Source: Mytilus trossulus (lineage: Eukaryota). From it: DNA of 64,000 nt. The translations under genes were made by a program, and so were the position numbers. The stretch spans positions 6,758,001-6,822,000 of the forward strand of contig NC_086381.1 in NCBI RefSeq assembly GCF_036588685.1. The letters are read 5' to 3'. Each line of letters opens with the position of its first letter. Within the stretch, counting starts at the first letter, position 1. Below are positions 757 to 19,687 of this stretch, in pieces. The notes under the pieces are model-generated. The model did no database searches, was not told where the DNA came from, and was given only the letters and a program-made list of their open reading frames with translations.

Positions 757-1084
757 GGGAGTATGCTGCTCAGGTTGATGTAATTAGAATGCTTTAAAAT
801 GGCATAGAAAATAAAGATATAACACTTTTTAACATGTTTTCATGTTTAATTAAGAAATCCATGTCAAAATTTTTTTTTATCATACAATCAGAAAAGGGAG
901 GTAATTCTTCCCATTTTCAATAGAAAAAATACCTTTACCTTTAAATAAAAAAAATCTCATATAAGTAAAACATAAAACAATAAATCAATTACAATTCATA
1001 ATATTTAGTATAAATTCTTGTCAAATTGCAAAGAATTTAATACTTGTTTTGCAGAATGATGATAAATTTCAGCACCACCTATAA

Positions 1085-1845
1085 CATGGATTTTTCCAAA
1101 AATCCACACTTCCTACAACTTTTTAGGTAGTAAAAAATAGGAAATTGTAATTAGAACCATATTTCAATAATTAATAGTTAAAAAGGAAGGTCTTATGACC
1201 TTAAAAACTGATACAAGAAAAAAATCCATGTTGGAATTAGAAAAAAATCTTCATTTCAATTTTCAAAAACTGAATTTTGCCCAAAATCTTCACTTTTTAC
1301 GACCTTTAAAGGCTTAAAAAATAAGAAATTGTAATCAGAACCACATTTTAAAAATTAATATTTAAGAATGAAGGTCTAATGATTCTTAAAACTGATTAAA
1401 GAATAAAATCCATGTTGGAATTCCAAAAAAAATCTTCATTTGAAATTTTCAAAAACTGGATTTTACCCAAAATCTACACTTTTTACAACCTTTTAGGGTG
1501 TACAAAATAGGAAATTGCAATCATAACCACATTTCAAAGTTACGGGTTAAAAAGAAAGGTCTAATGATCTTAAAAACTGATACAAGAAAAATATCCATGC
1601 TGGAATTCGAAAATTTATAAGCATAATTGAGATTTTCAAAAACTAGATTTTACTCAAAATCCAGACTTTCTACAACCTTTAAGGGGTAAAAAATTAAAAT
1701 TGTAATTAGAACCATATTTTAATAATTAATAGTTAATAAGGAAGGTATTATGATCTTGAAAACTGATACAAGAAAAAAAATCCATGTTGGAATTAGAAAA
1801 TAAACTGAATTTGAATTTTCAAAAAACTGTGGTTTTGCCCATATT
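1085..1845. repeat. Subterminal tandem repeat, ~185-bp unit x ~4, inside the transposon
   Basis: AAAATC(C/T)..ACT...AAATTGTAAT..GAACCA...AAAAACTGATACAAG...ATCCATGTTGGAATT recurs at ~1099, 1283, 1468 and 1655. Confidence 0.85.
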
Positions 1846-2631
1846 TTGTTCAATTTCAGTAGTATTACTGCCTCATTTTACTTTAAAAACTTCATAAACA
1901 AAAATTAAAGTATATTTATGGAGCAAATTATTATGTGATGTTAGCTAGTAAACATAGTTTTCCAACTTTTTCCTTTTGTCAATCTGTAACACACAGTCAT
2001 ATGTTGACCATCACAGGAAGTTTCTGGAAAATAGCCAAGTTCAAAAATCCAGAATTTTGTTAAAATTTAACCCTTTAACATCATAACTGGAAAAATTAAT
2101 AAACTTATCATGCATACCATAATATGATACAATTGTTATTATACCTTGAAAATGAAAGGGAATTAAAACAATTACATGTAAGGCACCATTCAGGTACCAA
2201 CGTTCCCTTACAATGTAAATATTGACAAGTGCAGTAAGAGGTCCATGACAATACTCAAAATTATCCCCTTTATTTTTTCAGAATAAATCATTTGTAATAG
2301 CTGATATATTTTTTAAGTACAATACAGTCCCTATGATCAATTTGAATTAAAGTATTTTCCAAAATATCAATAGAATTAGATGACTCTCCACTCTTGCTTA
2401 GACCAAAATTTCATGCTTCAGATAATAAATGGATAGAAAAATTAACATTCTCAATAACAAAAAATACCTGAACATTAATTTACATGCCAATTAGTTTTTT
2501 AAACAAAACAAATTTACACTCTGAAAACCATAGTCTATATAATAAATTTTGAATATGAAATAACCTAAAGCAAAATTGGAATGCAGTTCAAATTCGGATA
2601 TACAAATATGAAAGATACATGCTAAAGTACA

Positions 2632-3437
2632 TCACTCATCTGGTTTTAAACTTTTGAAAAAGTCTGATATGGCATCAACTATCTTCTTTGATTTGGTAAC
2701 ACGCACTTTTCCATTTACATCCTCCTCTTTCAGAACATCTTCTATTCCTTGGCGGCCATCTCTTGCATATGAAATACGTAGGTGAGAAAAAGACATGCCA
2801 CTTGCTGCTATTACATTTGCAGTTCTTAGTGTAATTACTTTCTTCTCTGTAAGAGGTGTCAAAGTAGGGAGAAGTAGTTTTGTTTTCTGGTTGTGGTCAT
2901 ATCTCCTTGCAGCTGAATCAAAGGAAAAAGATGACAATTGTTTTGCTTCTGTTGATGGAGCCAAGTGATGGAAAAGACGACTCAAAGCAACAACGTCCTC
3001 CATTGAATCATGACCGTCATATGTTTCATTTAATACTGTATTGTACAAATTTGATTGTGCATATGAGGTTAATCCAGGTAACAAAGATTTAAAAAGTTGT
3101 AGTGTGTCTAAAAATCCAAGAATGGAACATGAAAATTCATTCATAATTGAACAGTTATTTAAAGCACAAAACAGCACTGGTATGTCATATGACTTGATGT
3201 TATGACCTATAATTACATTTTTCTTGTATTGTGCTAAAAATAATATTAACATCTTTAAAGCCTCTTTGATGCCAACAGATTTCACTTCCTTGTCATGGCA
3301 AAACATCTTGCTACCTTCAACTTTGATCCCTGTTATTTCCTGTGCCTTAGGTGTTATTGGTTTCTTTGGAAGTACATATGTGTTGATAGAACCTTTGTCA
3401 GATGTTGCAGAAATCTGTGTTATGTGAGAGTTTCTTG
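2632..3437 (-). CDS. Exon 9, DEDDh exonuclease body and PML-like C-terminal region
   Basis: Lies in ORF 2632-3495; ExoII GHNIKSYD and ExoIII HDSMED; acceptor TTTCAG; ends in TGA. Confidence 0.92.
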
Positions 3438-6400
3438 CTGAAATATAAAAGGCATAATATTGGTAAATCACTTTCATGATAGGCATGTTGAACAAGCACT
3501 ACTAGCCAACAGAATCATGCCAATAAGAATTGAAAAATGCATTTACTAGAAATTTTTTAAACTATACAAGCCCAAGCTTTCGAAGCCGGTCATTCATATT
3601 ATCTATACTATTTGAATGCTCATTGATCCCAGTTTTTGTTTTCAAGAAAGTAGTAAACTGAAGCTAAAATTGTCAAATCAACGACTATAACATAACCTGG
3701 GTACTGAACAGTCCATTTTGAGAATAAACTTGTTTTGTAAATTTGAGACCTAACATTTGACCATACATTGTTCTTTGACCAAAGAATCCATACATATTTT
3801 GGACTTTTTATAGCTTACTAGGAAGTATGGGCTTTTTTCATTGTTGAAGGGAATACAGTGACCTATTGTTGTTAATTTCTATGCTATTTGATCTCTTGTG
3901 AAGAGTTGTTTCAGGGGCAATCATACCACATATTTTTTAAATACACAATATATTGGAGGCATACAAGTATAACATATAGCACACACAGCTCACCCTTTTA
4001 GAGTACCTGTATATAATTTATGTTTTAAGTGTGGTTCATCGTTTTTGTAGTTGATCAATTTTATAAAGAATTTGTCTGGTAATTTAGACACATGTATAAA
4101 GTTTCAATTTTTTTAATGAAAAATAGGGTTGCAATTTCAACACATGACCATATGAAAGCAATTCTGAAAACATATGTCAAATCAAAATTTCTATAGTAGA
4201 GATATATCTTTTTACTGCAATCATACCTAAGCCTGTTGCTTCAATGTCAAAGAAAATGTTATTCACTGTAGTGGACCATTCAATAGTTTGGTATGCAGGT
4301 TGAAGTGATGGACTTGGAATTTCTTCAATGTCATCTGAAAGGTGGTCTTCCAAGCCAATGCCAGAAGAATAAGTGACACCTTCTCTAACTTCTCTTGTTG
4401 CAAGCTTTTGATGTCTGAAATAATCCAAAAGGAATAAGTAGCAAAATGAGGCATCATAAAGGGTCTCTTCAGCCTTAGTCAATTAATTATCAATTACTGT
4501 GGATTCATAATTATTCGTTGGATACCAATTTTCGTGGATTTCGTGGGAACAGTAGAACCACGAAATTAAATGTTCAACGAATTACAAATTTTCAATAGGC
4601 TTGTATGCAGACTTCGGCAAAACCACGAAATCAAATATCCACGAACATGTAAGTTTAGCTCAATCCACGAAAATTGGTACCCACGAAAATAAAAGAATCC
4701 ACAGTAGTCAAAATACATTGAGTTATCATACAACATAGGTATTTGTACAAAGGCGGTACTTATTAATTTGAAATTGTTTGACATTTGTTTCTTTTTTTCT
4801 TCTAAAAGTAAAAGAAGTTTAAAATAATCATTTAACGAATTTTAGTCAGATTAGGTTTTATTTCTAATATATGAAAATGTTCCACAGTGTTTAGTACATT
4901 ATTTACGAATAATACGAACATATGGATAGAGTAGCTACTAAATGTAGAAGGACTTGATTGTTTTACTCACAAACTGAATACAGTCCTGACATTTTGGTGT
5001 TTTTTTTTAAAGCATGCTTTATCATTATTATACATGTTATATGCAGCAAAGGTAAAAATATTTTCCAATTGGTTGCAGGAAAATATTGTCACAAGTGCAC
5101 TGTGTTTGTATGCTTATTGTGACATTCATCAATCAAATAAACTTATTTGATAGTCAGCTCATTGGTAATCCCACCCTTAAAATTCAAATAGTCCTGTCAA
5201 ACTAAGATTTAACCTCAAATTAATTGCAACAGAAAATGTTTCAGTTAATCTATAGCATTATGCCCTTTATATACACAGAAAAAAGTCCCATAAAATCTAA
5301 CTTGAGGAAAACTCAAAATCAGCATTTCTAATTTCCTATGGAAATTTATATTGGATGGGGAGATAACTCTTGCAAAAATAAGTCTTTTTTGGTCAGTTTT
5401 TGGTTGTTTTTCTAGAAATTTATGTAAAGTATGATACTTTGATGGGGTTATAAGTTTGTATTTGACTAAATTATATAATCTTCTGCTCCTGATATATACA
5501 AAACCGAAGTGTTCTGGATAGTTTTATTTTTTTCTTGCACCTTTATTAAAGAAATTGCAAATTTGAAGCTTTGTAATCATTTTGAAAAAATAATGTGAAA
5601 ATTTGGTATTGTTTATATCTGTATATTATACTTAAAGTTGTTTGTTATACTCTAAAGACCGCTAAAAAGTCAAGAATCAATACATTCTGATGAATAGAAG
5701 CAGTAAAGATATAATTTTGTATCCTTTTGTATCAGTTTTTATTGATATATCTGCCTTTTTTTGCAAGAGTTATCTCCCTTTTCAATGCAAATCTCCATAA
5801 CATGGTGATTTTTTAGTCTTCCTAAAGCTAGATTTTATGGCACATTTTTCTGTGTATATTTGGGGTATGATGCTCAAGATTAAAACTTTAAAAATGTACT
5901 GTTGCAATTACTTTCAAGTTAAGGTCAAATTTATGCTAGATTGACTTGAATAAAAATTAGTAACACAGAAATAATCCCCTAAAAGATGGATCCTTTGGGA
6001 GAACATTCCGCTAATTTCAAAAAGCGTTAAAAGTTTAGGTACCTTGTTGACTTTAAATTTCTTCGTCTTTGTTTGAACCTATAAGTATTTGCTATCGCCT
6101 TTCTTTTCCGGTGTTGAATATCTCTTAGGACTGCCAAACGTAGAGTATAATATCCTGGGGATACAGACATGTTCTTGTTAACCTGAAATATAAAAATATC
6201 ACATTATAAATAATCATTACTATTCATGTTATTATAGAACTGTCATTGTAGTTGCAATACTTTCATTCCTGCATATCAAAAGAGATATATATTGTTTTGA
6301 AAATATTACAAAGGTAACACAGTTATCTGTGGACACAGCTTTCTTCAATTGACATTGATGTCATAAACAATCAGCCATAATAGATTAATAATTATATTTT

Positions 6401-9400
6401 GATATCTCCTGCACATAGGTACCTAATTCAACATGATAGATGATTAAATTTAAATTCCAATCCTAATTAGTATAACTTAATTCTGAATTTGTTTTTCATG
6501 TATTTATTCTTTTTTATTTGGGAGAGTGGTCTGTTGTCTTTGGTCAATTGATGTTTAATTTTTGGTTTGGCCTATTATCCTTTGTCTCATTTCTTTCAAG
6601 TAAGAATTCATCAGTTATGCTCAGACAAAATTAAATTATCAGTGGGATATTTCCAATTATCATTATCATGGTATTTGTGCAATTTATTATAATTAAGGAG
6701 AATAATTAACAGTAAAACCTTACATCTAATATATATTTATTCCCTTCATTCTTCTGAGCAACACAAGCCGCTATTCTATAGTTCAAAGAACCAGACGAAC
6801 TGTAGTGTTGTTGTTTAGGGGCCTTGGAAGCTACAATTCTATTAAAACTTTCGTTTGCCTGAGTACTTCCTAATGACGAAAGTTTACCACTATTCTCAGC
6901 ATACTTGGTGAACACACTCTTTAAATCATTCTGAAGGGCCCCATCTGTGAGTGGTTTACCATGTGGCAATGAGTTAAACTTTTCATTTGGGTTATCCAAG
7001 AACCTACACCAAGTGTTGTTACAACGCTCATGCTGTCCAAAAGGGTGACCAGAAAGAGCCAGTATACTTTCTTTTATCATGTCTGGATTTCCTTTGCCTT
7101 GAGCCAGTATATAGTTGAAACAGCGTTGTAAATACTGAATAACTTTTATTGTCAATGTTTTATGCTTCTTCCTTATTTCATAAAGACTGTTTCCCAGCAG
7201 TTTTTTAACATGGTTTGAGTCCGACACCTTTGTTATATCCTTGTCAACATTTGCTCTTAGTCTAGCAATAGTAGTGCTGTCTTCATCACCTACTATTGAG
7301 CTAACACTAACACCCTTTTTCCCCACATCTTTGACCATTTCTGTGACCATGTCTGCTTCCATACTCTTTGCACTCCCAGACCAATTCATGTGACACTCGT
7401 GCACAGGTGGTGAGCTTTTAGATTTTTCTGCCAAAGAGCAAACTCTGCATGACTTTATTCGGACTGCATAATTAACTATTTTTCCAGTTTCGGTACCTAT
7501 CATAGAACAATGACCTGAAAAAAATGAAGATTCAATAAATTGATAATAAATTTCTCACATTTATATAAATATTTTAAGAAGTCCATGAATGTCAGCATAC
7601 ATTTATACATTGTATATTCTAAAATCATAATTCATTACTTTTTTATCTAGTATACATGTATATTTCCAAAGCAAAGGCATTCCATTCCCATTGTGGAACA
7701 ATTTATAAACCTCATACACTACATGGTTAAATTCAGCATATTGTTGTTTGCCCCTAATTCCTAAACAGTTAGGGCCATAGCACCGAAATCAATCTTTTTT
7801 TTAGTGGAACCTTGTGGAACAAGATCCATACACTTTCACACAAGTTATTGTCTTAAAACTAGAAAAATGCTTTTTTAATACCGTTTTTTTTAGGCCCATA
7901 ATTCCTAAACTGATGGGACTATAACCCCTTAAATCAATCCAAATCTGCCTTTTGGGATTTTAAACCTTGTGTTTAAATCTAAAATAGACCCATTCACTTA
8001 AACTTAAGTTATTGTGTGGAAACTAAGTGTCTTCAGACCACACAGACAACGACGATGTGATACCAATATACAGCAGAAAATGGTTTTTGTTCGTATAAAA
8101 ACAAAAGGATCATGAACTCTCCTGGAAACTATGAATCTATGAGTTGGCGAACAGGTTCTATCAATTTCTACAGTGTACACATTTTATGTATTAGGTGCAT
8201 TAATTTTGAATTAAACACTGTTTATCCAGTCAAGTTCATTCATGTATAAATAGGGTCAATGCAGTCACAAAATTTTGCTATTCTATAGTTTTTTGACATG
8301 TTTATGGTTTAAAAATCTAACAAGAGCAAAGTCAGCAATGGACATTTGCCCCTATTCATTATAAACAATGCACATACTTGAAATTGCATTCATTGTATTG
8401 TGACCTTTGGTAATTCAGAGTTGTAGAAAGTAATTTTTTTTTTGCAACATTTTAAAGTGGAAATTTATATGGAAATCTTTTATTTTATGACCAGTGGTTT
8501 GCTGTTTAACCTAAATGTAATTGGTTGTTGTGTCATTAGATATAGGAAGATATGGTATGAGTGCCAATGATACCTCACTCCCTCCAAATATTAATAACAT
8601 CTTATTAAAGTAAACAATTATAGGTCAATATGAATATACGGCCTTCAACACAGAGCCTTTTCTTTGACTATTTATACAGACATCATTTAGAGAATTACCT
8701 ACCAGACAAACTGTTATAAGACCTTCCACTGCCCCTCATTTGCCATCCCGCATCTACAGCAGCTGTTATACTATCTTGGTCTTTATTTCTGAAAGAAAAA
8801 AGATCAATTTCCATTACAGTATATAACACTGACAAACTATACAATTTTGTAAGCAGGTCTATAAGTGACACCAAAGGTGAAAGCATGACTAGTACTCGCC
8901 CGTCAGTAAGGTTTCAACTTTTTTGGGATTATTTATTCCCTATTGAAATAACAATAAAAAATTAGCTATGAAACTCTTCTTTGATGAGTAACTGATCAAG
9001 TTCGCGTTTGTTTTCGTGGTCAGTTTTATTTTTTTTGCAAAATTACTGCTTATGGAGTTTATTTTGAAAATTCCTCCATATAGCTTTTTTTTTGGTATTT
9101 TTTTCTTAACAGGTTGTTTTATTGAGCTGATTTTAAACCAGATGCCATTCGCCCAATCCGGCATTTATTAAAACATCATTTCTTATTTACTTATATTGTC
9201 TAAGCTATCAATCAAGTTTCATGAAACTTTGTTCAATAGTTCCCGAGGAGAAAGAGATGAAAAGAATACATGTTAATTTGTTTCCCTACCAATGTGAGGG
9301 AGCCATTAATATATAATACTAGTAAAAATATGTCTTACCTTTTAGTTAACTCTACTTCCTCACACAGGGCTTGATCTACTGTTTCTTTTGCTACTTCTTG

Positions 9401-12400
9401 TAGTGCAACTCCAACATCCTTTTGCCTAGCTGACATCATACAATGGCTCACAGGAGGAATATTTAAACCAGATAGTAATGTGTTGACTTGCCTTTCACCC
9501 AGTCCTGCATTTATTGAAGCTATTAAAAAAAAACTATAAATAATAATAGTGAAGGCAGTTCTATAAATCAAAAACCTAATCTAATACAATATTTTTGTAA
9601 ATCATTTTCATTTGGTAATAACTGACAGTAAAATTCTCTATGTATACATGCATGCCTTGGCCAGGACAGGGCATGTTTTTTACTGCCATTTGGCAACAAT
9701 TTTTAAATTGCAATAGATTTAACACTGATTATACTGCAATCACCTATTTTACTATACAGATAAAGCTATACGTATAAACATTAGCTTTACACGTCAATGC
9801 CCTCAATTAATCTATAAGCCCCGCCTTCTTACTGGAACTACTGTATTCCATCAACAACGTCACGTCACGACCATGACATGTACTTGATTAATAACATTTG
9901 ATAAACATGGTTTATAAATAACAATTTAAAGACATAAAAGTTTAAATTCATAAAAGAGTGACCATTGTTACTTTACACTGTCAGGGGTTAAAAAATCCAC
10001 TAGCCCGACGCCCGGGACTAGACATTTACGTCTCGGGCAACCAAAACTTATAACCCAGTATGCCCGACGGACTAGTAACAAAAAATTCTTGGCGTGTCTA
10101 AAATAGAAAGTGGAAAATCCCTTCATCACTTTTCTGTCTTAGCCAATCAGATCGGGATAAGCAAAAAAGAACGTTCATAGCGACATGGAATGAAAGATTC
10201 CTGTGGGCAAGGTCACTTGTTGAGGATGAAAAGCCAGAGACTATGTACAAAATGCCCTTTCAAAAAATGACACACATTCCCAGCATCTTATGCAGCACAC
10301 CCTGAGTGATTTGTAAGTGATACTTGGGCTAGCAGGTTGGTTTTGATGGGCTAGCAGTTCTTGAAACATGGCTAGTAAAAACCACCTGCCAAAAAGTCCT
10401 GGGCTAGTTAGCTGTAACAAAAATTTTTAACCCCTGGACTGTATGTATGTTATTAAATCAAATACCTGAAGCAAGCTTTACATTTGCATCCCATATTCTC
10501 TCCTGTCTTTTCCCAGTTGGTATATTATTGACATGTCTACACACTGTGTTACTACAAGGAATCTGCCAAAAAAGTTAAACCACATCTTTACATTTATTCC
10601 ATTTTATTCATATATAATTACATTAGATGTGCTTAATACAAAATGTACTTCGGTCAATGCTTTTACACCCAAATGAATTTACAAAAAGAAGCATTCAATT
10701 CTTAAATATATTACACTAATTGAAGCAAAAGTCAGTCCATTTTCTACTGTAAAATTTTACAAAGCAAAATAAAGCAAAACAGAAAATAAACTTAAATCTC
10801 AAAGTTTAAATTTATCAAATTCATTTAATTTCTGAATGACTTAAAAACTTAAAAAGGGGCAAAAGTCAGAAACAATGATTGAAAGTGATCCCACATTGGA
10901 ACTATAAATTTCAAATCATTTTGATGATGCAACGTTAAGTAAGAAAACAGAAAACAATTTCTTAGGTACTGTTGCACCAACAGACATACAAGGGAACAGT
11001 CTATTGACAGTCACACATGTTTCGAAAGTCAATTCGGCACCAAATTTTTCATCAGTATTATAACAACAAACAATTTCAATGATCACTCAGTATATTTTAA
11101 CCCAGTTGTACCTTTAGAATAGCAGACAATCCACATGTAAGTATACTGGTAGTGTGTCCAAGTTGTAAAGGAAGTCCACATTTTGCACACCCACGCAATC
11201 CATCAGCAAGTATACCAAGCTCAACAACTCTTCTTCCTTCTCGCCATTGTGTAAAGCTTCTTGAATTTGGCACTTGAACCTCTTCTTCATGATCAACCCC
11301 AATTGGAAACACTAAAATTACAAAAAGTAACTTGAAGTTAAATAGATGTCATAAAATCTGTATTTTATTCTTTTACATAAGAATTATTTCTTGAGAATCA
11401 GGCCATGGAAAATTAATTGTTGGTTTCCCCAAACTAAGGAAAATTTAAAGACCCGGCAGGCAGGCTATTTTTTTTTTTTTTAATTTTTTTTTAAATAACC
11501 CGATCGGGTTAGGGGAAACCATGCTTCAATTATTTTTCCATGGCCTCAGTTGTGATGATAGAGTAAGGAAATATTGTAAATGCCTTCCCTTTCAATAACA
11601 ATTGATAGATCTAATTCTATTTATATTTGCCGTACTCTAATAAACAATATATTAAATACATGTATATGTCAACTTTCTCCTATAATAATAAGCATCTACT
11701 TTTAGTTATTCCTATTCAGTTTTCAGTTTATGGCTGTTTTTAAGTTAGGGACAGTACTGATATAAGTAGCTTAGATAAGGAACATGTTAAGGGAAGATAC
11801 TGTAGATGTACATGATATTTTCCAAAACATATATGAAATAAAAAATGTGTTAAGAAGGTTTTTTTTTCACATCACCAAATTAACCCCCTTTTTCTAGAAT
11901 TTTTCAATAACCATAACATAATAATTCAGTATTCCATCAAAAGAAATGAATTATCTAATATATATATATATTTTTTTTGTCAACAGATACTATGAAAGTT
12001 CAGCCTACATGTAAAAATTTTCAGACAAATATCAGAGGGTGGTAAATGTTTTTTGTCTTCCTTTTTGTTTCATATGTTTCCTTGCCAGGTGGTTTTTACT
12101 TACAGTAGTTTGTGATAATCATCAAAACAACTCTACAATTATTTCTATGCAATGTTTTTGCGATTTTAATTTCATGTTTTACAGTGTTCCGTTATCAGGT
12201 CTGTTCATGCTTAATAATACAGTTTCGCACCCTACATGTTTGCACCTCTCATGTTCGCCCCTAAGTTGGTTCGCACAGAATACATGTTGAAGTCAAATTT
12301 TCATAAAAATTCCAGTTAAATTATTAGATATTTTTTAATACATGTACATTTATGTATACAAATGTACATTGTATGTATACAAAAATATTATAAAAATTAT

Positions 12401-14375
12401 CTTACCATACAAATCCTTGACAAAACCAATAAAATGTGTTTGAATGGACTTTGGCTGTGAACGTGTAAGGTGAGAAAGTGAAAGGGGGCAAAAGAGAGTA
12501 TGGGAAACATGTTTTCAGGCGAACAAACACAGATTTTGGGGGAACTTTTCTTGGAAAAATTATTGATTATATAGGAATTCACTGAAGCATGACCAGAGCC
12601 CTCCCCTCTTAGGAAGTTATGAAAAATTCTGGATCTGCTGATTTCCATATAATCAGACCTCACCCCATTATCATGGTTGTATTGTCATGTTTTGGACAAA
12701 ACATAAGGATTAAAGGTCATAGTTGTAATGCATAAAAACCCTTATTCTTTATTCCATGTATGTTTAGTATTTGATGATTGTTTTTTTTTAATTAGATGTT
12801 AACTTAGTGGCTTTGAACTAGCTGTCAGATGACTGCCGGTACTCTCAAATCTGTTCCTAGTCTTTTTGTTGTCAGGATGTACATGTACAAGTACCTCAGG
12901 CCATGTCCAATTTTATTTTTGTCCATCTGATGAGTTAAGCCTTTTTCAACTAATTTTTATACTTCGTTTTTATGTTGTACTATTATACCACTGTCCCAGG
13001 TTAGAGGAGGGTTGGGACCCCCATCACATGTTTAACCCTGCCACATTATTTATGTATGCGCCTGTCCCAAGTTAGGAGCCTGTTATTCAGTGGTTATCGT
13101 TTGTTTATGTGTCACATATTTGTTTTTCGTTCATTTTTTATATAAATGAGGCTGTTGGTTTTCTCGTTTGAATTGTTTTACATTGTCATTTTGGGGCCTT
13201 TTGTAGCTGACTATAGATGCGGTATGGACTTTGCTCATTGTTGACGGCTGTAAGGTGACTTATACAATGTAGTTGTTAATGTCTGTCATTTTGGTCTCTT
13301 GTGGATAGTTGTCTCATTGGCAATCATACCACATCTTCTTTTTTATATAAAGGTTTGACTGACTAGTTAGATTTAGTTAGATTTTTTTTCTTTGGTTATA
13401 TATACGTACATCTTGACATCAAATTAGCAAAATGCCACACTTCCTAGTAGAAAATTTTGCTTTCAAATAAAAATAAAATTATAGCAATCATGGCTTCAAC
13501 ATAGTCAAGATGTCATATAGATTTTTACTACCCACTTCCATACTTAATCCTGCTGCAAATGTTTGCACCTGTCCTATTAAGTCAGGAATCTGATGTACAG
13601 TAGTTGTCGTTTGTTTATGTAATTTATATGTGTTTCTTGTTTTTTATATAGATTATACCTTTGGTTTTCCCGTTTGAATGGTTTTACACTAGGCCTAAAA
13701 TAAAATATTGTTTGTTTCCCCAATCCCGACTGATACTGCAAAACTTGATGCTACTCATGAAATTTTATTGTCCAAACTAAGTCAAATATTATTTTATTCT
13801 TTTTGGATTTTCAGGCTTGCTGGATCGTGCGATAATGTTAAGCTTTTTGGAAAAATAAAATTATTTTCCTACCTACCTTCACACACCTGGCTAGGCAGGG
13901 TCGAGATTGGGGACTTGGGGAAACAACAAAGTTTTTTTAATTATTTTGATTTATATGTATCACAATACATGTATGTATGCAGGCATTTCGTAAATATGTG
14001 AGGCATTTCTTAAAAAATCTGACATTTCGAAAATTCAATGTGATGTTCAGGGTTAGTGTTATCGTTATGACTCTATGTAATCCGAGATTACTCTGACGTC
14101 CAACGTCTGTTTTGCCAGACAAGCTGGTTTCGTCCCACTGCAAAACAGCAGTTGTACGTCGGAGTAATCTCGGACTATCTGCAGTATCATTATGATGATG
14201 TTATTTTCAAGTTCCACCGCCACAGGCTTTATCACTTACTCGTCGTATTCTGTTGTGTTGAATAAGAATGATCTTCTAGTGGAACATTCCAACGCTTCTT
14301 CTGTGCTTCAGAAACTTTCTCGTATCTATCCTTGTACTTTTTGTGGGAGAAACCACCTTTCTTGAATCGTCCCAT
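2632..14375 (-). CDS. Spliced 9-exon gene, ~874 aa: Cys/His zinc-binding N-terminus, DDE transposase (Mutator-like/Kolobok type), DEDDh 3'-5' exonuclease with PML-like C-terminus
   Basis: Exons 14375-14240, 11311-11112, 10562-10466, 9519-9339, 8788-8703, 7514-6724, 6182-6043, 4414-4227, 3437-2632. All introns are GT-AG and the phases (1,0,1,2,1,0,2,1) are mutually consistent. Transposase motifs: VDAGWQMRGSGRSYNSLSGH, IVGDEDS, SDSNHVKK, STQANESFN. Exonuclease motifs: FFDIEATGL, IIGHNIKSYD, HDSMED. Confidence 0.88.
4227..4414 (-). CDS. Exon 8 (REVREGVTYSSGIG...FFDIEATGL), includes exonuclease motif I
   Basis: Lies in ORF 4177-4482; acceptor TTTCAG, donor G|GTATGA. Confidence 0.88.
4497..4704. 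mobile_element. Tc1/mariner-type MITE in intron 7
   Basis: TA|CTGTGGATTC ... GAATCCACAG|TA, with internal CCACGAA repeats. Confidence 0.85.
5195..5945. mobile_element. Degenerate foldback/MITE with ~190-bp imperfect inverted arms in intron 7
   Basis: TAATTGCAACAG...GGGAGATAACTCTTGCAAAAA (5221-5380) is mirrored by TTTTTGCAAGAGTTATCTCCC...CTGTTGCAATTA (5757-5910). Ends are approximate. Confidence 0.65.
6043..6182 (-). CDS. Exon 7, basic linker (VNKNMSVSPG...RKRKAIANTYRFKQRRRNLKST)
   Basis: Hand translation; acceptor TTTCAG, donor AG|GTAC; NLS-like basic run. Confidence 0.85.
6724..7514 (-). CDS. Exon 6, transposase catalytic core
   Basis: Overlaps ORF 6706-7503: CRVC..HEC, SAKSMEAD, IVGDEDSTT, HPFGQHERC..WC, STQANESFN. 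Donor GAT|GTAAGG. Confidence 0.92.
8703..8788 (-). CDS. Exon 5 with the first catalytic Asp (VDAGWQMRGSGRSYNSLSG)
   Basis: Lies in ORF 8695-8886; acceptor TTTCAG, donor G|GTAGGT. Confidence 0.88.
9339..9519 (-). CDS. Exon 4 (SINAGLGERQVNTLLSGLNIPP...EEVELTK)
   Basis: Lies in ORF 9335-9571; acceptor AATAG, donor AAG|GTAAG. Confidence 0.85.
9982..10436. mobile_element. hAT-like non-autonomous element in intron 3
   Basis: TIR CAGGGGTTAAAAA...TTTTTAACCCCTG; subterminal CTAGCCC/GGGCTAG motifs; flanks CACTGT / GACTGT. Confidence 0.8.
10466..10562 (-). CDS. Exon 3 (IPCSNTVCRHVNNIPTGKRQERIWDANVKLAS)
   Basis: Hand translation; acceptor GGCAG, donor CAG|GTATTT; supplies the second Cys pair of the zinc ribbon. 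Confidence 0.85.
11112..11311 (-). CDS. Exon 2 (WREGRRVVELGILADGLRGCAKC...GLSAILK)
   Basis: Lies in ORF 11097-11312; acceptor TTTTAG, donor AAG|GTAC; CxxC motif. Confidence 0.85.
11401..11545. mobile_element. PIF/Harbinger-type MITE in intron 1
   Basis: TCA|GGCCATGGAAAA...TTTTCCATGGCC|TCA (3-bp TSD). Confidence 0.85.
12800..13348 (+). repeat. Dispersed repeat, family A-related, in intron 1
   Basis: Shares the CCTGTCCCAAGT.AGGA core and the TTGTCTCATTGGCAATCATACCACATCTTC tail with copies at 29925, 31470 and others. Boundaries are approximate. Confidence 0.65.
14078..14177. mobile_element. 100-bp MITE / hairpin in intron 1
   Basis: TAATCCGAGATTACTCTGACGTCCAAC ... GTTGTACGTCGGAGTAATCTCGGACTA, a ~27-bp imperfect inverted repeat; no TSD seen. 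Confidence 0.7.
14240..14375 (-). CDS. Exon 1 (MGRFKKGGFSHKKYKDRYEKVSEAQKKRWNVPLEDHSYSTQQNTT)
   Basis: ATG at 14375, open frame to a strong donor A|GTAAGT; phase 1 fits exon 2. Basic N-terminus and a DHSY motif. Confidence 0.7.
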
Positions 14376-14610
14376 TGTGTCGTCTGGCAATTTGTTTACA
14401 TTGCCGGGAAACGGCGCGTCATTCGCAGTGTCGTAAAACTCGTTAAAACTATTTCATTTTAACAATAAAAATATTTAAAATTATTCTGGACATATAAAAA
14501 TAATATTTTTGTTTGTTATATGATTTCTTTATTATTTAAATAAAAAAAAACTCCGACCACGTTTTACGATAAACAACTGATTTTCCGCAGCCAAAAGCTG
14601 ACCAGCAAAC

Positions 14611-16825
14611 CTATAACCTTTATGTGTGTTCTTTGCAATACTGTTGGAGACTCCTGTTACCTATAACCTTTCTATGTGTTCTGTGCAATACTGTTGGAGA
14701 TTCCTGTTACCTATAACCTTTTTGTGTGGTCTGTGCAATATTGTTGGAGACTCCTGTTACCTATAACCTTTTTGTGTGGTCTGTGCAATATTGTTGGAGA
14801 TTTCTATCACCTATAATCTTTCTGTGTGTTCTGTGCAATATTGTTGGAGACTCCTGTTACCTATAACCTTTCTGTGTGTTCTGTGCAATATTGTTGGAAA
14901 CTCCTGCTACCAATAACCTTTCAGTGTGTTCAGTCCAATGTTGTTGGAGATTTCTATCATCTATAACCTTTCTTTGTGTTCTGTGCAATACTGTTGGAGA
15001 CTCCTGTTCCCCTATAACCTTTCTGTGTGTTCTGTCCAATATTGTTAGAGATTGATGTCACTTATAACCTTTCTGTGTGTTCTGTGCGATATTGTTGGAG
15101 ACTCCTGTTACCTATAACCTTTCTGTGTGTTCTGTGCAATATTGTTGGAGACTCCTGCTACCAATAACCTTTCAGTGTGTTCAGTCCAATATTGTTAGAG
15201 ATTTCTATCACCTATAACCTTTCTGTGTGTTCTGTGCAATACTGTTAGAGACTCCTGTTACCTATAACCTTTCTGTGTGGTCTGTGCAATATTGTTGGAG
15301 ATTCTCCTGTTACCTATAACCTTTATGTGTGTTCTTTGCAATACTGTTGGAGACTCCTGTTACATATAACCTTTCTGTGTGGTCTGTGCAATACTGTTGG
15401 AGACTCCTGTTACCTATAACCTTTATGTGTGTTCTTTGCAATACTGTTGGAGACTCCTGTTACCTATAACCTTTCTATGTGTTCTGTGTAATACTGTTGG
15501 AGATTCCTGTTACCTATAACCTTTCTGTGTGGTCTGTGCAATATTGTTGGAGACTCCTGTTACCTATAACCTTTCAGTGTGTTCAGTCCAATATTGTTGG
15601 AGATTTTTATCACCTATAATCTTTCTGTGTGTTCTGTAAAACATTGTTGGAGACTCCTGTTACCTAAAACCTTTCTGTGTGTTCTGTGCAATATTGTTGG
15701 AGATTCCTGTTACCTATAACCTTTCAATGTGATCTGTCCAATATTTTGCGAGATTGATGTCACCTATAACCTTTATGTGTTATGTCCAAAGTTGTTGGAG
15801 ACTCCTGTTACCTATAACCTTTCTGTGTGTTCTGTCCAATATTGTTGGAGATTCATTTTCCCCTATAACCTTTCTGTTTGTTCTGTGCATTACTGTTGGA
15901 GACTACTGTTACCTATAATCTTTCTGTGTGTACTTTGCAATATTGTCGGAGACTCCTGTTACCTATAACCTTTCTGTGTGTTCTGTGCAATAATGTTGGA
16001 GATTCCTGTTACCTATAACCTTTCTGTGTGTTCTGTGCAATATTGTTGAAGATTCTTGTTACCTATAACCTTTCAGTGTGTTATGTCCATTATTATTCGA
16101 GATTGATTTCACCTATAACCTTTCTGTGTGTTCTGTCCAATATTGTTGGAGAGTCTTATCACCTATACCCTTTCTATGGGTTCTGTCCAATATTGTTGGA
16201 GAGTCTTATCACCTATACCCTTTCTATGGGTTCTGTCCAATATTGTTGGAGAGTCCTATCACCTATACCCTTTCTATGGGTTCTGTCCAATATTGTTGGA
16301 GAGTCCTATCACCTATACCCTTTCTATGGGTTCTGTCCAAAGTTGTTGGAGAGTCTTATCACCTATACCCTTTCTATGGGTTCTGTCCAATATTGTTGGA
16401 GAGTCTTATCACCTATACCCTTTCTATGGGTTCTGTCCAAAGTTGTTGGAGAGTCTTATCACCTATACCCTTTCTATGGGTTCTGTCCAAAGTTGTTGGA
16501 GAGTCTTATCACCTATACCCTTTCTATGGGTTCTGTCCAATATTGTTGGAGAGTCTTATCACCTATACCCTTTCTATGGGTTCTGTCCAATATTGTTGGA
16601 GAGTCTTATCACCTATACCCTTTCTATGGGTTCTGTCCAATATTATTGGAGAGTCTTATCACCTTTACCCTTTCTATGGGTTCTGTCCAATATTGTTGGA
16701 GAGTCCTATCACCTATACCCTTTCTATGGGTTCTGTCCAATATTGTTGGAGAGTCTTATCACCGATAACCTTTCTATGTATTCTGTCCAATATTATTGGA
16801 GATTCATGTTTCATATAACCTTTCA
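14611..16825. repeat. 50-bp tandem satellite, ~44 copies in two subarrays
   Basis: Unit ACCTATAACCTTTCTGTGTGTTCTGTGCAATATTGTTGGAGACTCCTGTT up to ~16130, then the homogeneous variant ACCTATACCCTTTCTATGGGTTCTGTCCAATATTGTTGGAGAGTCTTATC. Confidence 0.95.
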
Positions 16826-18095
16826 GCGCGTTATGACATATATATGTTTTAATTCTAACACCAATGATGTAATTATGTAAACAAGAAAGAAAACATGAAG
16901 CTAAATCACTTAATTCTGATAACATCAAGTTTGTTTTGTTGATCTAATTTGCTTTTAATGCACACTTCTTTGCAAAGCATATGTACCCATGCAATGTTCA
17001 GACATTAAGTTGTCAAATTAAATCAATCAATCAATTGTAACAGTCGACCTTGTTCCGTACTTTTTACAAATTTGATTATACAAAAAAAAATGTATGAAAA
17101 TCTGTTCCTGTCAGTCAAACAGTTAAAACTGATTCGGTAGAGAGCTTTAAGTGCAATTTTTTGGCATTAAAATATTATAGCTTGAAATTTCATGATATCG
17201 ACTAGATCTTCAAATAAACGCATGTCATATTGAGCCATATTATTTTTTCTGCAATTATAGCAACTTGTTTTTTGAGTGGACTACCTTCGACACTTATGTA
17301 TTGCCAAGTAAAAGTCATATTGCAGATATTGGCGTTCAGAACACTTCCAATTCCCTATCCTTCATACGATTTTTTTACACCTCAGATCAGAATCATAAAA
17401 TACAAATGCATTTCTCTATGAATAAATCTTCTAGACTTTCACTAGAAGATATAGACTAGATCTCTCCCTTGCAACATTCAGGTATATAAGCCAACCAGAT
17501 AAAGTATCGGAAACCAGTCTTAATTTCAAGCAACTGTCAAAATATTGCTTCTCTGGAAGTTTAGAAGTATTATTCGACCAATATAAGACAAAAAAAATAA
17601 AACCTATAAAATGAGGATGGAAATGGAGAATGGACCAAAAAGACAGCAAGCCGAACAAAGAGCTAAAACAGTCGAAGGCCACTTATGGGACTTAAACAAA
17701 GCGAGAAGTTCCTGCAACCAGAGGCGGGCCTCGCTGGCCCCTAAACAAAAAGAAGTACTAGTTCAAAGAAAATGGGCGTCATAATAAACCCCAAAACATT
17801 TAACTGCAAACTAAAATAAGAAAAAAAACCGTACAAGACTAACAAAGCCAGAAGCTTCTGACTTAGGACATGTACAATCATGCGGCGGGGTTAAACATGA
17901 GATCTAAACTCTCCCATATATCAACTCTTACTAATGTAGATTAAAATACACACAATAATACATATAGTAAAACTCAGATTAAAAGAGGTCCGAGTCTGAT
18001 ATGTTGTGAATTGTTTTATATAATATGAATGTTCTTATCCTGGGCATACAAACAATGCCGTATTTGGCAAAACCTTTTCAACTTTTGATCTTCAG

Positions 18096-18851
18096 TGCTG
18101 TACAATTTTGTATTTTTTTCGTCACTGGTGAGTCTCGTGTGGACTAGACGCGTTTTTGGCGTATTGAATTTTAAACCTGATGCTTTTTGTTATCTATTAA
18201 TCATGCTTTTCTTTGTCTAATATGTTCTGCTTTTTATTTGTATTGTAGTCCTGTAATTTTTTGTTTTCATTTCAATGTTATATTTAACTGTGCCATTAAA
18301 GTGCGAGGTTTGGCATGCCTTAAAACCAGGTTCAACCCACCACTTTTATTCCCCTTTAAAAGTGTCCTGTACCAAGTCAGGAAGATGGCCATTGTTATAA
18401 TATTGTTCGTTTCTGTTTTCTCTTATTTTTGAGATAAGACGTGGCACGGTACTTGTCTATCCCATATTCATGTATTTGGTTTTGATGTTATATTTGTTAT
18501 TCTCGTGGTGTATTGTCTGTTGCTTGGTCCGTTTCTGTGTGCTGTTGCGTTTCCGTGTTGTGTCGTTGTTCTCCTCTTATATTTAATGCGTTTCCCTCAG
18601 TTTTGGTTTGTTGCCCCGATTTTGTTTTTTGTCCATGGATTTATGAGTTTTGAACAGCGGTATACTACTGTTGCCTTTATTTGACAACGAATGTCCATTC
18701 AATCTGATTAAAAATAATACAACACTCAATTCTACTTTTAGTTTAAATATTTTTCGGGATCCTTTGGTTCTTATAATAATACACACGTAGGCTGACATTG
18801 TTTAAGTACCAGTAACATAAAGTAGAGCTGAGTGATGACGAATGCTTTTAA
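18096..18851 (+). repeat. Direct duplication, copy 2, ending at the empty TTAA target site
   Basis: ...GAATGCTTTTAA|GCGAAAGG here versus ...GAATGCTTTTAA|GGGAGTATG at 757. Confidence 0.95.
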
Positions 18852-19687
18852 GCGAAAGGTGAATACATGATCTAAAATTCAATAAGATTGTATTTCCATC
18901 AGTTCTAGAAATGATACATCTATCAGGTGCTGCGGACGGAATTGCATATCCTGCTTCACGTGCAACATCCGTCATACAGCTTCCGATTAAAACCAATAAT
19001 CTCTAAAATTCTGTAAAGTTAGCAATCAATAAAAGGAAATTAGAAAATCAAATACAGGTTTTCAATCTGCTAATGGTAAGATGAGTTACAATAATGATAA
19101 GAAAAATCATCCATATGAATGAACAAAATCCTATATGTTTGTTCTTGAAAGATTGATTTTTACCATTTACGACTTTTGTATCGATAGTTTTAACTCATTA
19201 CATTTTTTGCATTTTGTTCTCTTTTTCCCGTCTTTAATAATAAACTGTAATGGTTTACATATGTTTTAGTATTTGTAATTTTACTTAGCAGTTAAAAAAA
19301 TCAATGGTACCGTCAAGCTAAATTAAATGACTTGAAACCTTGATTGCATCGCGTTCTCATTGACTCTAGGTATTATATGTTATTATGTGAATTAATGACG
19401 AGATAAAACGATGCTACAAGAAGGAAACGGATGTTTCTAAAGAATAAAATAAAGATATAATCTGTCACAGTATCATTCTTAAGACATAGCTTTATCACAG
19501 ATATATAGAGATAGCTGATTATACCATTGTATACATTGGTGCAAAGATGAATGCTAAGTGTTAAAGGTGAAATTCAATAGTGTTCAGCATTATGTAAATT
19601 GTGTATTGTTATAAATAAAAACATCGATTTTACTTGTCGATTATAAGAATGTCTTTTTTAATCTTAAAAACTAAATTCTAAATCAAG

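Follow-up and report, generated by a model that had tools for sequence, protein, structure and literature searches.

A TTAA-inserting transposon of Mytilus trossulus, very probably of the KolobokD lineage, encodes a transposase and a DEDDh exonuclease in one spliced gene

Kolobok transposons are recognized by a TTAA target-site duplication, 5'-RR...YY-3' termini, a DxxH signature in the transposase and two zinc fingers (PMC9587614). One lineage, KolobokD, was described in one paragraph by Kojima and Bao (Mob DNA 2022, PMC9587614). In KolobokD elements, which occur in molluscs, arthropods and cnidarians, the Kolobok transposase is followed by a DEDDh (DnaQ-type) exonuclease, and one zinc finger lies between D2 and E, while the second, of the CCHC type, lies after D1. 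The exonuclease was proposed in the same article to degrade DNA intermediates from the 3' end. Here, a stretch of 64,000 nt from the mussel Mytilus trossulus was analyzed (contig NC_086381.1, positions 6,758,001 to 6,822,000 of the forward strand), which is called the window and is numbered from its first letter. A preliminary description, made from the sequence alone, had noted a transposon with a transposase-exonuclease fusion gene at positions 757-14610. The analysis revealed that this region is, with high confidence, one copy of a DNA transposon of the KolobokD lineage.

The assignment is based on the transposase and on the ends of the element. For domain and fold searches, single exons or database proteins such as P0152 served as queries. 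The joined model of 874 amino acids (aa) served to check the frame, was aligned locally with other proteins, and was included as one sequence in the exonuclease trees and in the approximately unbiased (AU) test. Pfam family PF20700 ("Mutator-like transposase") was matched by exons 4-6, with an E value of 6e-53 for exon 6. In an alignment of the window protein with 12 long homologues, the catalytic residues D217 (VDAGW), D310 (GDED) and E455 (ANESFN) are conserved in at least 12 of the 13 proteins. The DxxH signature is present as D332-S-N-H335, the CCHC finger consists of C256, C259, H272 and C274, and the second zinc finger of H390, H395, C398 and C403; again, all of these residues are in conserved columns. 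In addition, the motif blocks (DAGWQ.RG, ...DSTT, D.NH..K, STQ.NESFN) match by eye those of Kolobok-7_CGi in the published alignment (PMC9587614). Together with the RR..YY termini and the TTAA duplication, which in the window copy is visible at the left end only, these results confirm the Kolobok reading of the preliminary description.

The window element has in common with the KolobokD lineage the TTAA duplication, the RR..YY termini, the DDE transposase with DxxH, both zinc fingers, an in-frame DEDDh exonuclease downstream of the transposase, and the mollusc host. The architecture had been considered possibly novel, but KolobokD was published in 2022, and therefore it is already catalogued and only this family member is new. 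The M. trossulus family was not found by name, and the label "KolobokD" is absent from the supplements of PMC9587614. In contrast to the present analysis, the searched passages of the article contain neither a single spliced transcript nor PML, which has 0 occurrences there. What the present analysis adds is support for the production of both enzymes as a single spliced protein, and for a recent, expressed family in Mytilus.

The gene is located on the minus strand. A tblastn analysis with full-length homologues revealed nine coding blocks between 14375 and 2632, and a search of GT-AG pairs yielded a single clearly best in-frame path. The joined exons comprise 2625 nt and encode 874 aa with 0 internal stops, and the eight introns have lengths of 541-2928 nt, so that the nine exons, the open frame of 874 aa and the introns of 0.5-2.9 kb postulated earlier were all recovered. 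Exon 1 (14240-14375) starts with the ATG at 14375-14373; it was found by tblastn with P0006, has the donor GTAAGT, and its junction peptide is identical in P0117, a gene model of Mytilus galloprovincialis. Exon 2 (11112-11311), which encodes the Cys-rich N-terminal region, and exon 3 (10466-10562) were both defined by tblastn, the GT-AG path and P0117. The PF20700 transposase core begins in exon 4 (9339-9519; Pfam E 4e-14, GT-AG path, P0117). The first catalytic Asp, D217 of VDAGW, is encoded by exon 5 (8703-8788; Pfam, joint 7514/8703 in contigs of four sequencing runs), and the CCHC finger, D310, the DxxH signature at 332-335, the second finger and E455 are all encoded by exon 6 (6724-7514; PF20700, contig joints). 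Exon 7 (6043-6182; tblastn, joints 6182/6724 and 4414/6043) encodes a basic linker. Exon 8 (4227-4414; tblastn, contigs, and P0152, which crosses the junction) encodes linker as well as the first exonuclease motif DIE (D600, E602). The last exon (2632-3437; Pfam and PDB matches) encodes the remaining part of the DEDDh exonuclease (D691, H749, D754), the SAM-like PML_C domain and the stop codon at 2632-2634. The order within the protein is therefore Cys-rich N-terminus, Kolobok DDE core with two zinc fingers, basic linker, Plex9/TREX-like DEDDh exonuclease, and SAM-like PML_C.

The element is transcribed, and the transcript is spliced into one mRNA for the 874-aa protein. Seventeen public runs contain a fraction of 0.27-0.37 of the sampled words from 2632-8800, and the exon share of this region is 0.33. 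Four runs from four studies with four organism labels were used for a test of spliced contigs in the region 2800-8799, which covers junctions 5-8. All four runs contained contigs that skip 3437/4227, 4414/6043 (or an equivalent register), 6182/6724 and 7514/8703, and the skipped segments bear CT..AC ends, i.e., GT..AG on the gene strand. One contig of 2598 nt spans exons 6-9 plus 684 nt further upstream, which places the exons of both enzymes on the same spliced molecule, as expected for the single fused gene that had been proposed. A confirmation of all eight junctions by RNA had been suggested; it was achieved with contigs for junctions 5-8, and junctions 1-4 were found via splice signals and the P0117 model. 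Junction peptides 1-5 are identical in P0117. A spliced contig of run X2 carries a deletion of 2 nt in exon 6 (window position 6912), and thus defective, frameshifted copies are transcribed too.

The second half of the fusion protein was characterized by sequence and fold comparisons. Exon 9 matched the Pfam families RNase_T (E 4e-7) and PF25244, the "PML C-terminal domain" (PML_C; E 2e-23). As predicted for the motifs of both enzymes, the exonuclease residues D600 and E602 (FFDIEATG), D691 (SYD), and H749 and D754 (HDSMED) are all intact, and they show little or no variation among 27 relatives. In comparison to PDB chains, exon 9 reached E values of 2e-28 to 1e-19 with the Plex9-type structures 9L8B, 9L85 and 9MRC/9MRD, of which 9MRC is zebrafish Plex9.1 (PMC13659232), but only 4e-4 to 2e-3 with TREX1/TREX2. 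The same was true for the Kolobok-borne exonucleases, which yielded E values of 1e-28 to 1e-35 versus Plex9 and 1e-3 versus TREX. The fold was modeled with AlphaFold for P0152, an M. trossulus protein with 98% identity to exons 8-9, together with 27 aligned relatives. The model (predicted local distance difference test score 87) can be superimposed on Plex9.1 with a Z score of 27.8, a root mean square deviation (rmsd) of 1.6 A and 32% identity, while Z is about 22 for TREX1. A Plex9-family protein of the fish Channa argus is 36% identical to P0152 over 187 aa, i.e., over the whole domain. The domain thus has the fold, the five catalytic residues and the closest similarity expected for the Plex9/PML-CDE group of exonucleases; it is encoded within the gene of a multi-copy transposon and not by a stand-alone host gene at a conserved locus. 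When exon 9 or a profile of four sequences was the query, homologue searches retrieved invertebrate proteins only, and a single fish protein was matched in a search with a region of a Littorina protein.

The window DNA is AT-rich (about 30% GC), and the element, with the gene on the minus strand, has a size of 13.9 kb (757-14610). Contigs of the M. trossulus genome assembly (G000) are given with C numbers in the following. By blastn, the similarity to the copies on C4, C10, C6, C20, C8 and C57 starts at 753 and ends at 14610, and beyond these positions the flanks of the copies are unrelated, which verified the boundaries given in the preliminary description. The body at 757-14610 contains the whole element except for 4 nt that are missing from the tip of the right terminus. 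At the left end of the window copy TTAA (753-756) is directly followed by GGGAGTATGCTGCTCAGG. TTAA directly precedes GGGAGTA at seven of eight left ends, each in an unrelated flank, and ACTCCC is directly followed by TTAA at all four right ends of other copies, again in differing flanks. The element inserts at TTAA and duplicates TTAA. The right terminus of the family, in these four copies, reads ...AAACTCCC followed by TTAA, and the termini, 5'-GGGAGT...ACTCCC-3', are imperfect terminal inverted repeats of about 20 bp. The left repeat of the window copy, GGGAGTATGCTGCTCAGGTT (757-776, plus strand), is on the 3' side of the gene and agrees with the reverse complement of the family right terminus in 17 of its 20 positions. 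The right repeat (14591-14610, plus strand) is truncated; it ends with ...CAGCAAAC, while other copies end with ...CAGCAAACTCCC followed by TTAA. Short inverted repeats next to TTAA, as claimed before, are therefore present at the left end and at the ends of the family, but the right end of the window copy is 4 nt too short and lacks CCC-TTAA. An inverted-repeat search with a minimum of 14 nt missed the terminal repeats because they are short, imperfect and, in the window copy, truncated; they were revealed by the comparison of copies.

The transposase exon matched 148 times in the M. trossulus genome, including copies with 99%, 98%, 96% and 91% amino-acid identity as well as many more distant families. 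The exonuclease matched 145 times, and most of these matches are paired with a transposase match a few kb away, which speaks against a chance juxtaposition. For the left end 21 occurrences were counted, for the right end 7. Both termini are retained in five copies, i.e., the window copy, copies on C20 (12.8 kb), C8 (14.0 kb) and C6 (15.4 kb), and a 4.3-kb derivative on C10. Several copies at unrelated sites are 87-99% identical. The derivative (G000:C10:20875555-20879828, locus L029) is internally deleted, has both termini and is flanked by TTAA on either side; it is a candidate for a non-autonomous relative.

The fusion is not limited to the window copy. Of ten long homologues examined (728-913 aa), eight have the order PF20700, RNase_T, PML_C, and a ninth has the exonuclease without PML_C. 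Named long fusion homologues are from Pecten, Saccostrea and Mytilus, and 72 of the fetched proteins bear both the transposase and the exonuclease. In some distant families of the M. trossulus genome both domains are encoded in one open frame of 667-693 aa, and therefore the intron-rich layout is a trait of a sub-lineage and not of KolobokD as a whole. Paired matches were also observed for dozens of other Kolobok families of this genome, e.g., C6:89052781-89054661, C4:44244794-44246689 and C3:67671250-67675028. In one subfamily with 62% identity, the scores of several copies are almost the same, which points to a recent burst.

Three other explanations for the gene were weighed, and each of them has some support. 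The label "protein PML-like", which NCBI gives to the exonuclease part in M. trossulus, the intact frame, the gene-like layout with eight introns and the spliced transcripts would all fit to a domesticated and immobile host gene, in which a PML-like exonuclease was fused to an old transposase. However, near-identical copies are numerous, have unrelated flanks and share the same inverted ends and TTAA, and most copies are frameshifted, deleted or truncated like decaying transposon copies. Paralogues bounded by inverted repeats and TTAA in different flanks verify the earlier view that this is a transposon and not a single-copy host locus, and domestication of the gene itself is thus extremely improbable. 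The transposase and the exonuclease could also belong to two genes or transcripts within one element, similar to Kolobok lineages with a second open reading frame. The RefSeq-type models P0151 and P0152 do comprise only the exonuclease part, and an internal promoter or an alternative transcript is possible. Yet the contigs of the four runs connect exon 6 via exons 7 and 8 with exon 9 in one continuous frame, the predicted proteins of Pecten, Saccostrea and other Mytilus include single fusions with 728-913 aa, and the uninterrupted 667-693-aa frames in other families of the genome contain both domains, so that two separate genes are very unlikely. An assignment to another superfamily, either piggyBac or Mutator/MuDR, was suggested by the TTAA duplication in the first case and by the name of PF20700 in the second. 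PiggyBac shares the TTAA-specific insertion with a 4-bp duplication, but its transposase family is unrelated, it has no accessory nuclease, and its terminal bases are CCC...GGG, in contrast to GGG...CCC of the element. The duplication of MuDR is 8-10 bp, not the 4-bp TTAA, and the ends of the element are about 20 bp, not long terminal repeats. In addition, no piggyBac or MULE (PF10551) domain was matched in Pfam at E values up to 1, the motif blocks match Repbase Kolobok-7_CGi in the published alignment, and the two Kolobok zinc fingers are present. Another superfamily is therefore hardly conceivable.

Several points weigh against the interpretation as an expressed KolobokD transposon. The assignment to KolobokD relies on published criteria and on a by-eye match of motifs. 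The support for junctions 1-4 comes from the sister-species gene model and splice signals, not from run contigs. The type of the runs as RNA was guessed only, and processed DNA copies are possible, but the absence of introns from the contigs and the share of words (0.27-0.37), which is about that of the exons, are in favor of RNA. Furthermore, all other both-ended copies examined are frameshifted or deleted in exon 6 or exon 9, and intact gene and intact ends were not seen together in any copy examined. Lastly, the role of the exonuclease is deduced here from sequence and model.

The right end of the window copy needed a separate explanation. Its last letters are ...CAGCAAAC; 4 nt of the family terminus and the TTAA are missing, and it is joined via an overlap of 2 nt (AC) to a 50-bp satellite at 14609-16824. 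The satellite is the first part of a duplicate of the element's own upstream flank (14609-18852, plus strand); the duplicate continues with 2028 unique bp and ends with TTAA (18848-18851) and a G, after which the new flank begins. Positions 16825-18852 are identical to window positions -1270 to 757, with 0 mismatches over 2028 bp. From the right, the ungapped identity extends over 2207 bp to the first mismatch and over about 3.3 kb with one mismatch, before it runs out of register in the satellite, and the whole 4.25-kb duplicate is 97.6% identical (blastn). The same 50-bp satellite array is present upstream of the element at window positions -5603 to -1271 (G000:C9, L030). With the flanking stretches lettered U, A and B, the order reads satellite - U - A - TTAA - element (lacking 4 nt) - partial satellite - U - A - TTAA - B.

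Three readings of this layout were considered. A break at the right terminus could have been repaired by copying of an empty site followed by end joining. Alternatively, a tandem duplication could have been followed by the precise excision of an intact second copy. The third reading is an error of the assembly, e.g., due to a heterozygous insertion, in which case the broken end and the 4.2-kb duplicate of the flank would be artifacts and the real copy would be complete. The 100% identity of the unique part of the duplicate over 2028 bp and the location of the join within a satellite, where assemblers fail, are in favor of an error. However, the join shares just 2 nt (AC), which is too short for any overlap assembler, and there is no gap and 0 N in the window. 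The two haplotypes of a very heterozygous mussel are expected to differ over 2 kb, which also counts against an error. An assembly error thus appears rather unlikely. The frame is whole, but the right terminus has been shortened by 4 nt and its TTAA is missing; the window copy probably can still supply the protein but no longer undergo normal excision. A failed excision may have left the broken end and the duplicated flank as a natural footprint in this member of the Kolobok superfamily.

The DDE core would excise the element and paste it into TTAA sites. The fused exonuclease may trim, in cis, the 3' ends of DNA intermediates at the excised ends or at the donor break; this function, which agrees with the suggestion of the preliminary description and with the proposal of PMC9587614, is the likeliest of the roles considered, though slightly more doubtful than not. 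Clearing of free DNA or retroelement cDNA, similar to TREX1/Plex9, would be a different role and is rather improbable, and a role in nucleic-acid binding similar to Exuperantia is quite unlikely.

Additional features were found inside the element. A tandem repeat of 184 bp with 4.1 units (1087-1841) lies beyond the stop codon, in the subterminal region on the 3' side; it is kept in other copies and could contain putative transposase binding sites. The stretches 4497-4917 in intron 7, which is a gap in alignments to the copies on C4, C20 and C8, and 9982-10437 in intron 3, which is missing from those on C20, C8 and C6, are later insertions without counterpart in other copies, and both are private to the window copy. 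The first of them contains an element of about 212 bp (4495-4706) with inverted ends of 27 nt (inverted repeats I8/I9), which is a very abundant small Mytilus repeat because its contig depth is in the thousands in all four runs. Very high summed contig depths were also observed for the intron stretches 3800-4000, 5200-5900, 7800-8000 and 8400-8600. As these are common to other copies, they are probably further high-copy repeats that were nested already in the ancestor of the family. An Rfam scan of the whole window gave no match.

The similarity of the exonuclease to Plex9 raises the question of its origin. The exonuclease-plus-SAM-like module of PML isoform 1 (exon 9) and the fish Plex9 proteins might descend from a KolobokD-type accessory domain, in which case part of PML would be a domesticated transposon gene; this is proposed tentatively, with more doubt than confidence. 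It is favored because the Kolobok-borne exonucleases match Plex9 far better than TREX and carry PML_C. A parallel for such a domestication is the case of KolX and the P2X7 ballast domain, which was noted by Kojima and Bao (PMC9587614). The exonuclease trees were quick trees with one fish sequence and no PML sequence. In these trees, the fish Plex9-family protein groups with the bivalve transposase fusions, with values of 94-96 in the Shimodaira-Hasegawa-like approximate likelihood ratio test (SH-aLRT), and in the AU test a position of the fish protein outside of all transposon copies was not rejected (p 0.67). In the opposite direction, a capture of a host gene by the transposon is equally conceivable. 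In the literature searched, no paper connects either PML or Plex9 to Kolobok or to a transposase, and one review of 2022 contains "Kolobok" and "PML" once each; transposases and Kolobok are also unmentioned in the PML/Plex9 papers PMC10123124 and PMC13659232. If the kinship is due to domestication, part of a much-studied vertebrate gene has a transposon origin.

The results are also relevant for annotation. Public gene sets split such elements into host genes named "protein PML-like", "exuperantia-like" or "uncharacterized". Among P0151, P0152, P0200 and P0220, the first name was observed on element pieces of Mytilus and Littorina, and "maternal protein exuperantia-like" on pieces of Saccostrea echinata. 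The exonuclease domain of the "exuperantia-like" protein of S. echinata is almost identical to that of P0212, which bears a transposase.

Taken together, the exonuclease can be compared with four known systems. It has the DEDDh fold and all catalytic residues in common with Plex9 (PDB 9MRC/9MRD), but Plex9 proteins are encoded by stand-alone host genes in synteny with PML (Mathavarajah et al. 2023, PMC10123124), whereas the domain of the element forms the C-terminal portion of a transposase, and PML_C, which is present in the element protein, is missing from the one fish Plex9 member checked. The exon 9 module of vertebrate PML isoform 1 (PXL domain, PMC13659232) has an exonuclease-like part followed by a SAM-like part and thus the same order as the element, a likeness drawn from its description and the Pfam model. 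In contrast to the element, with its intact residues and transposase partner, the PML module has lost the DEDD residues, is inactive and is located behind TRIM/RBCC (PMC13659232). Drosophila Exuperantia (PDB 5L80) also combines an EXO-like with a SAM-like domain, and Z is 25.4 over the EXO-like domain with 205 residues aligned; a Foldseek alignment covers 320 columns across both domains, but with an rmsd of 12 A. Exuperantia is a catalytically dead RNA-binding host protein with only 16-18% identity to the element domain. TREX1 and TREX2, finally, share the fold of DEDDh 3'-5' DNA exonucleases with the element, but they are encoded by host genes, lack a SAM-like domain and have a much weaker sequence match.

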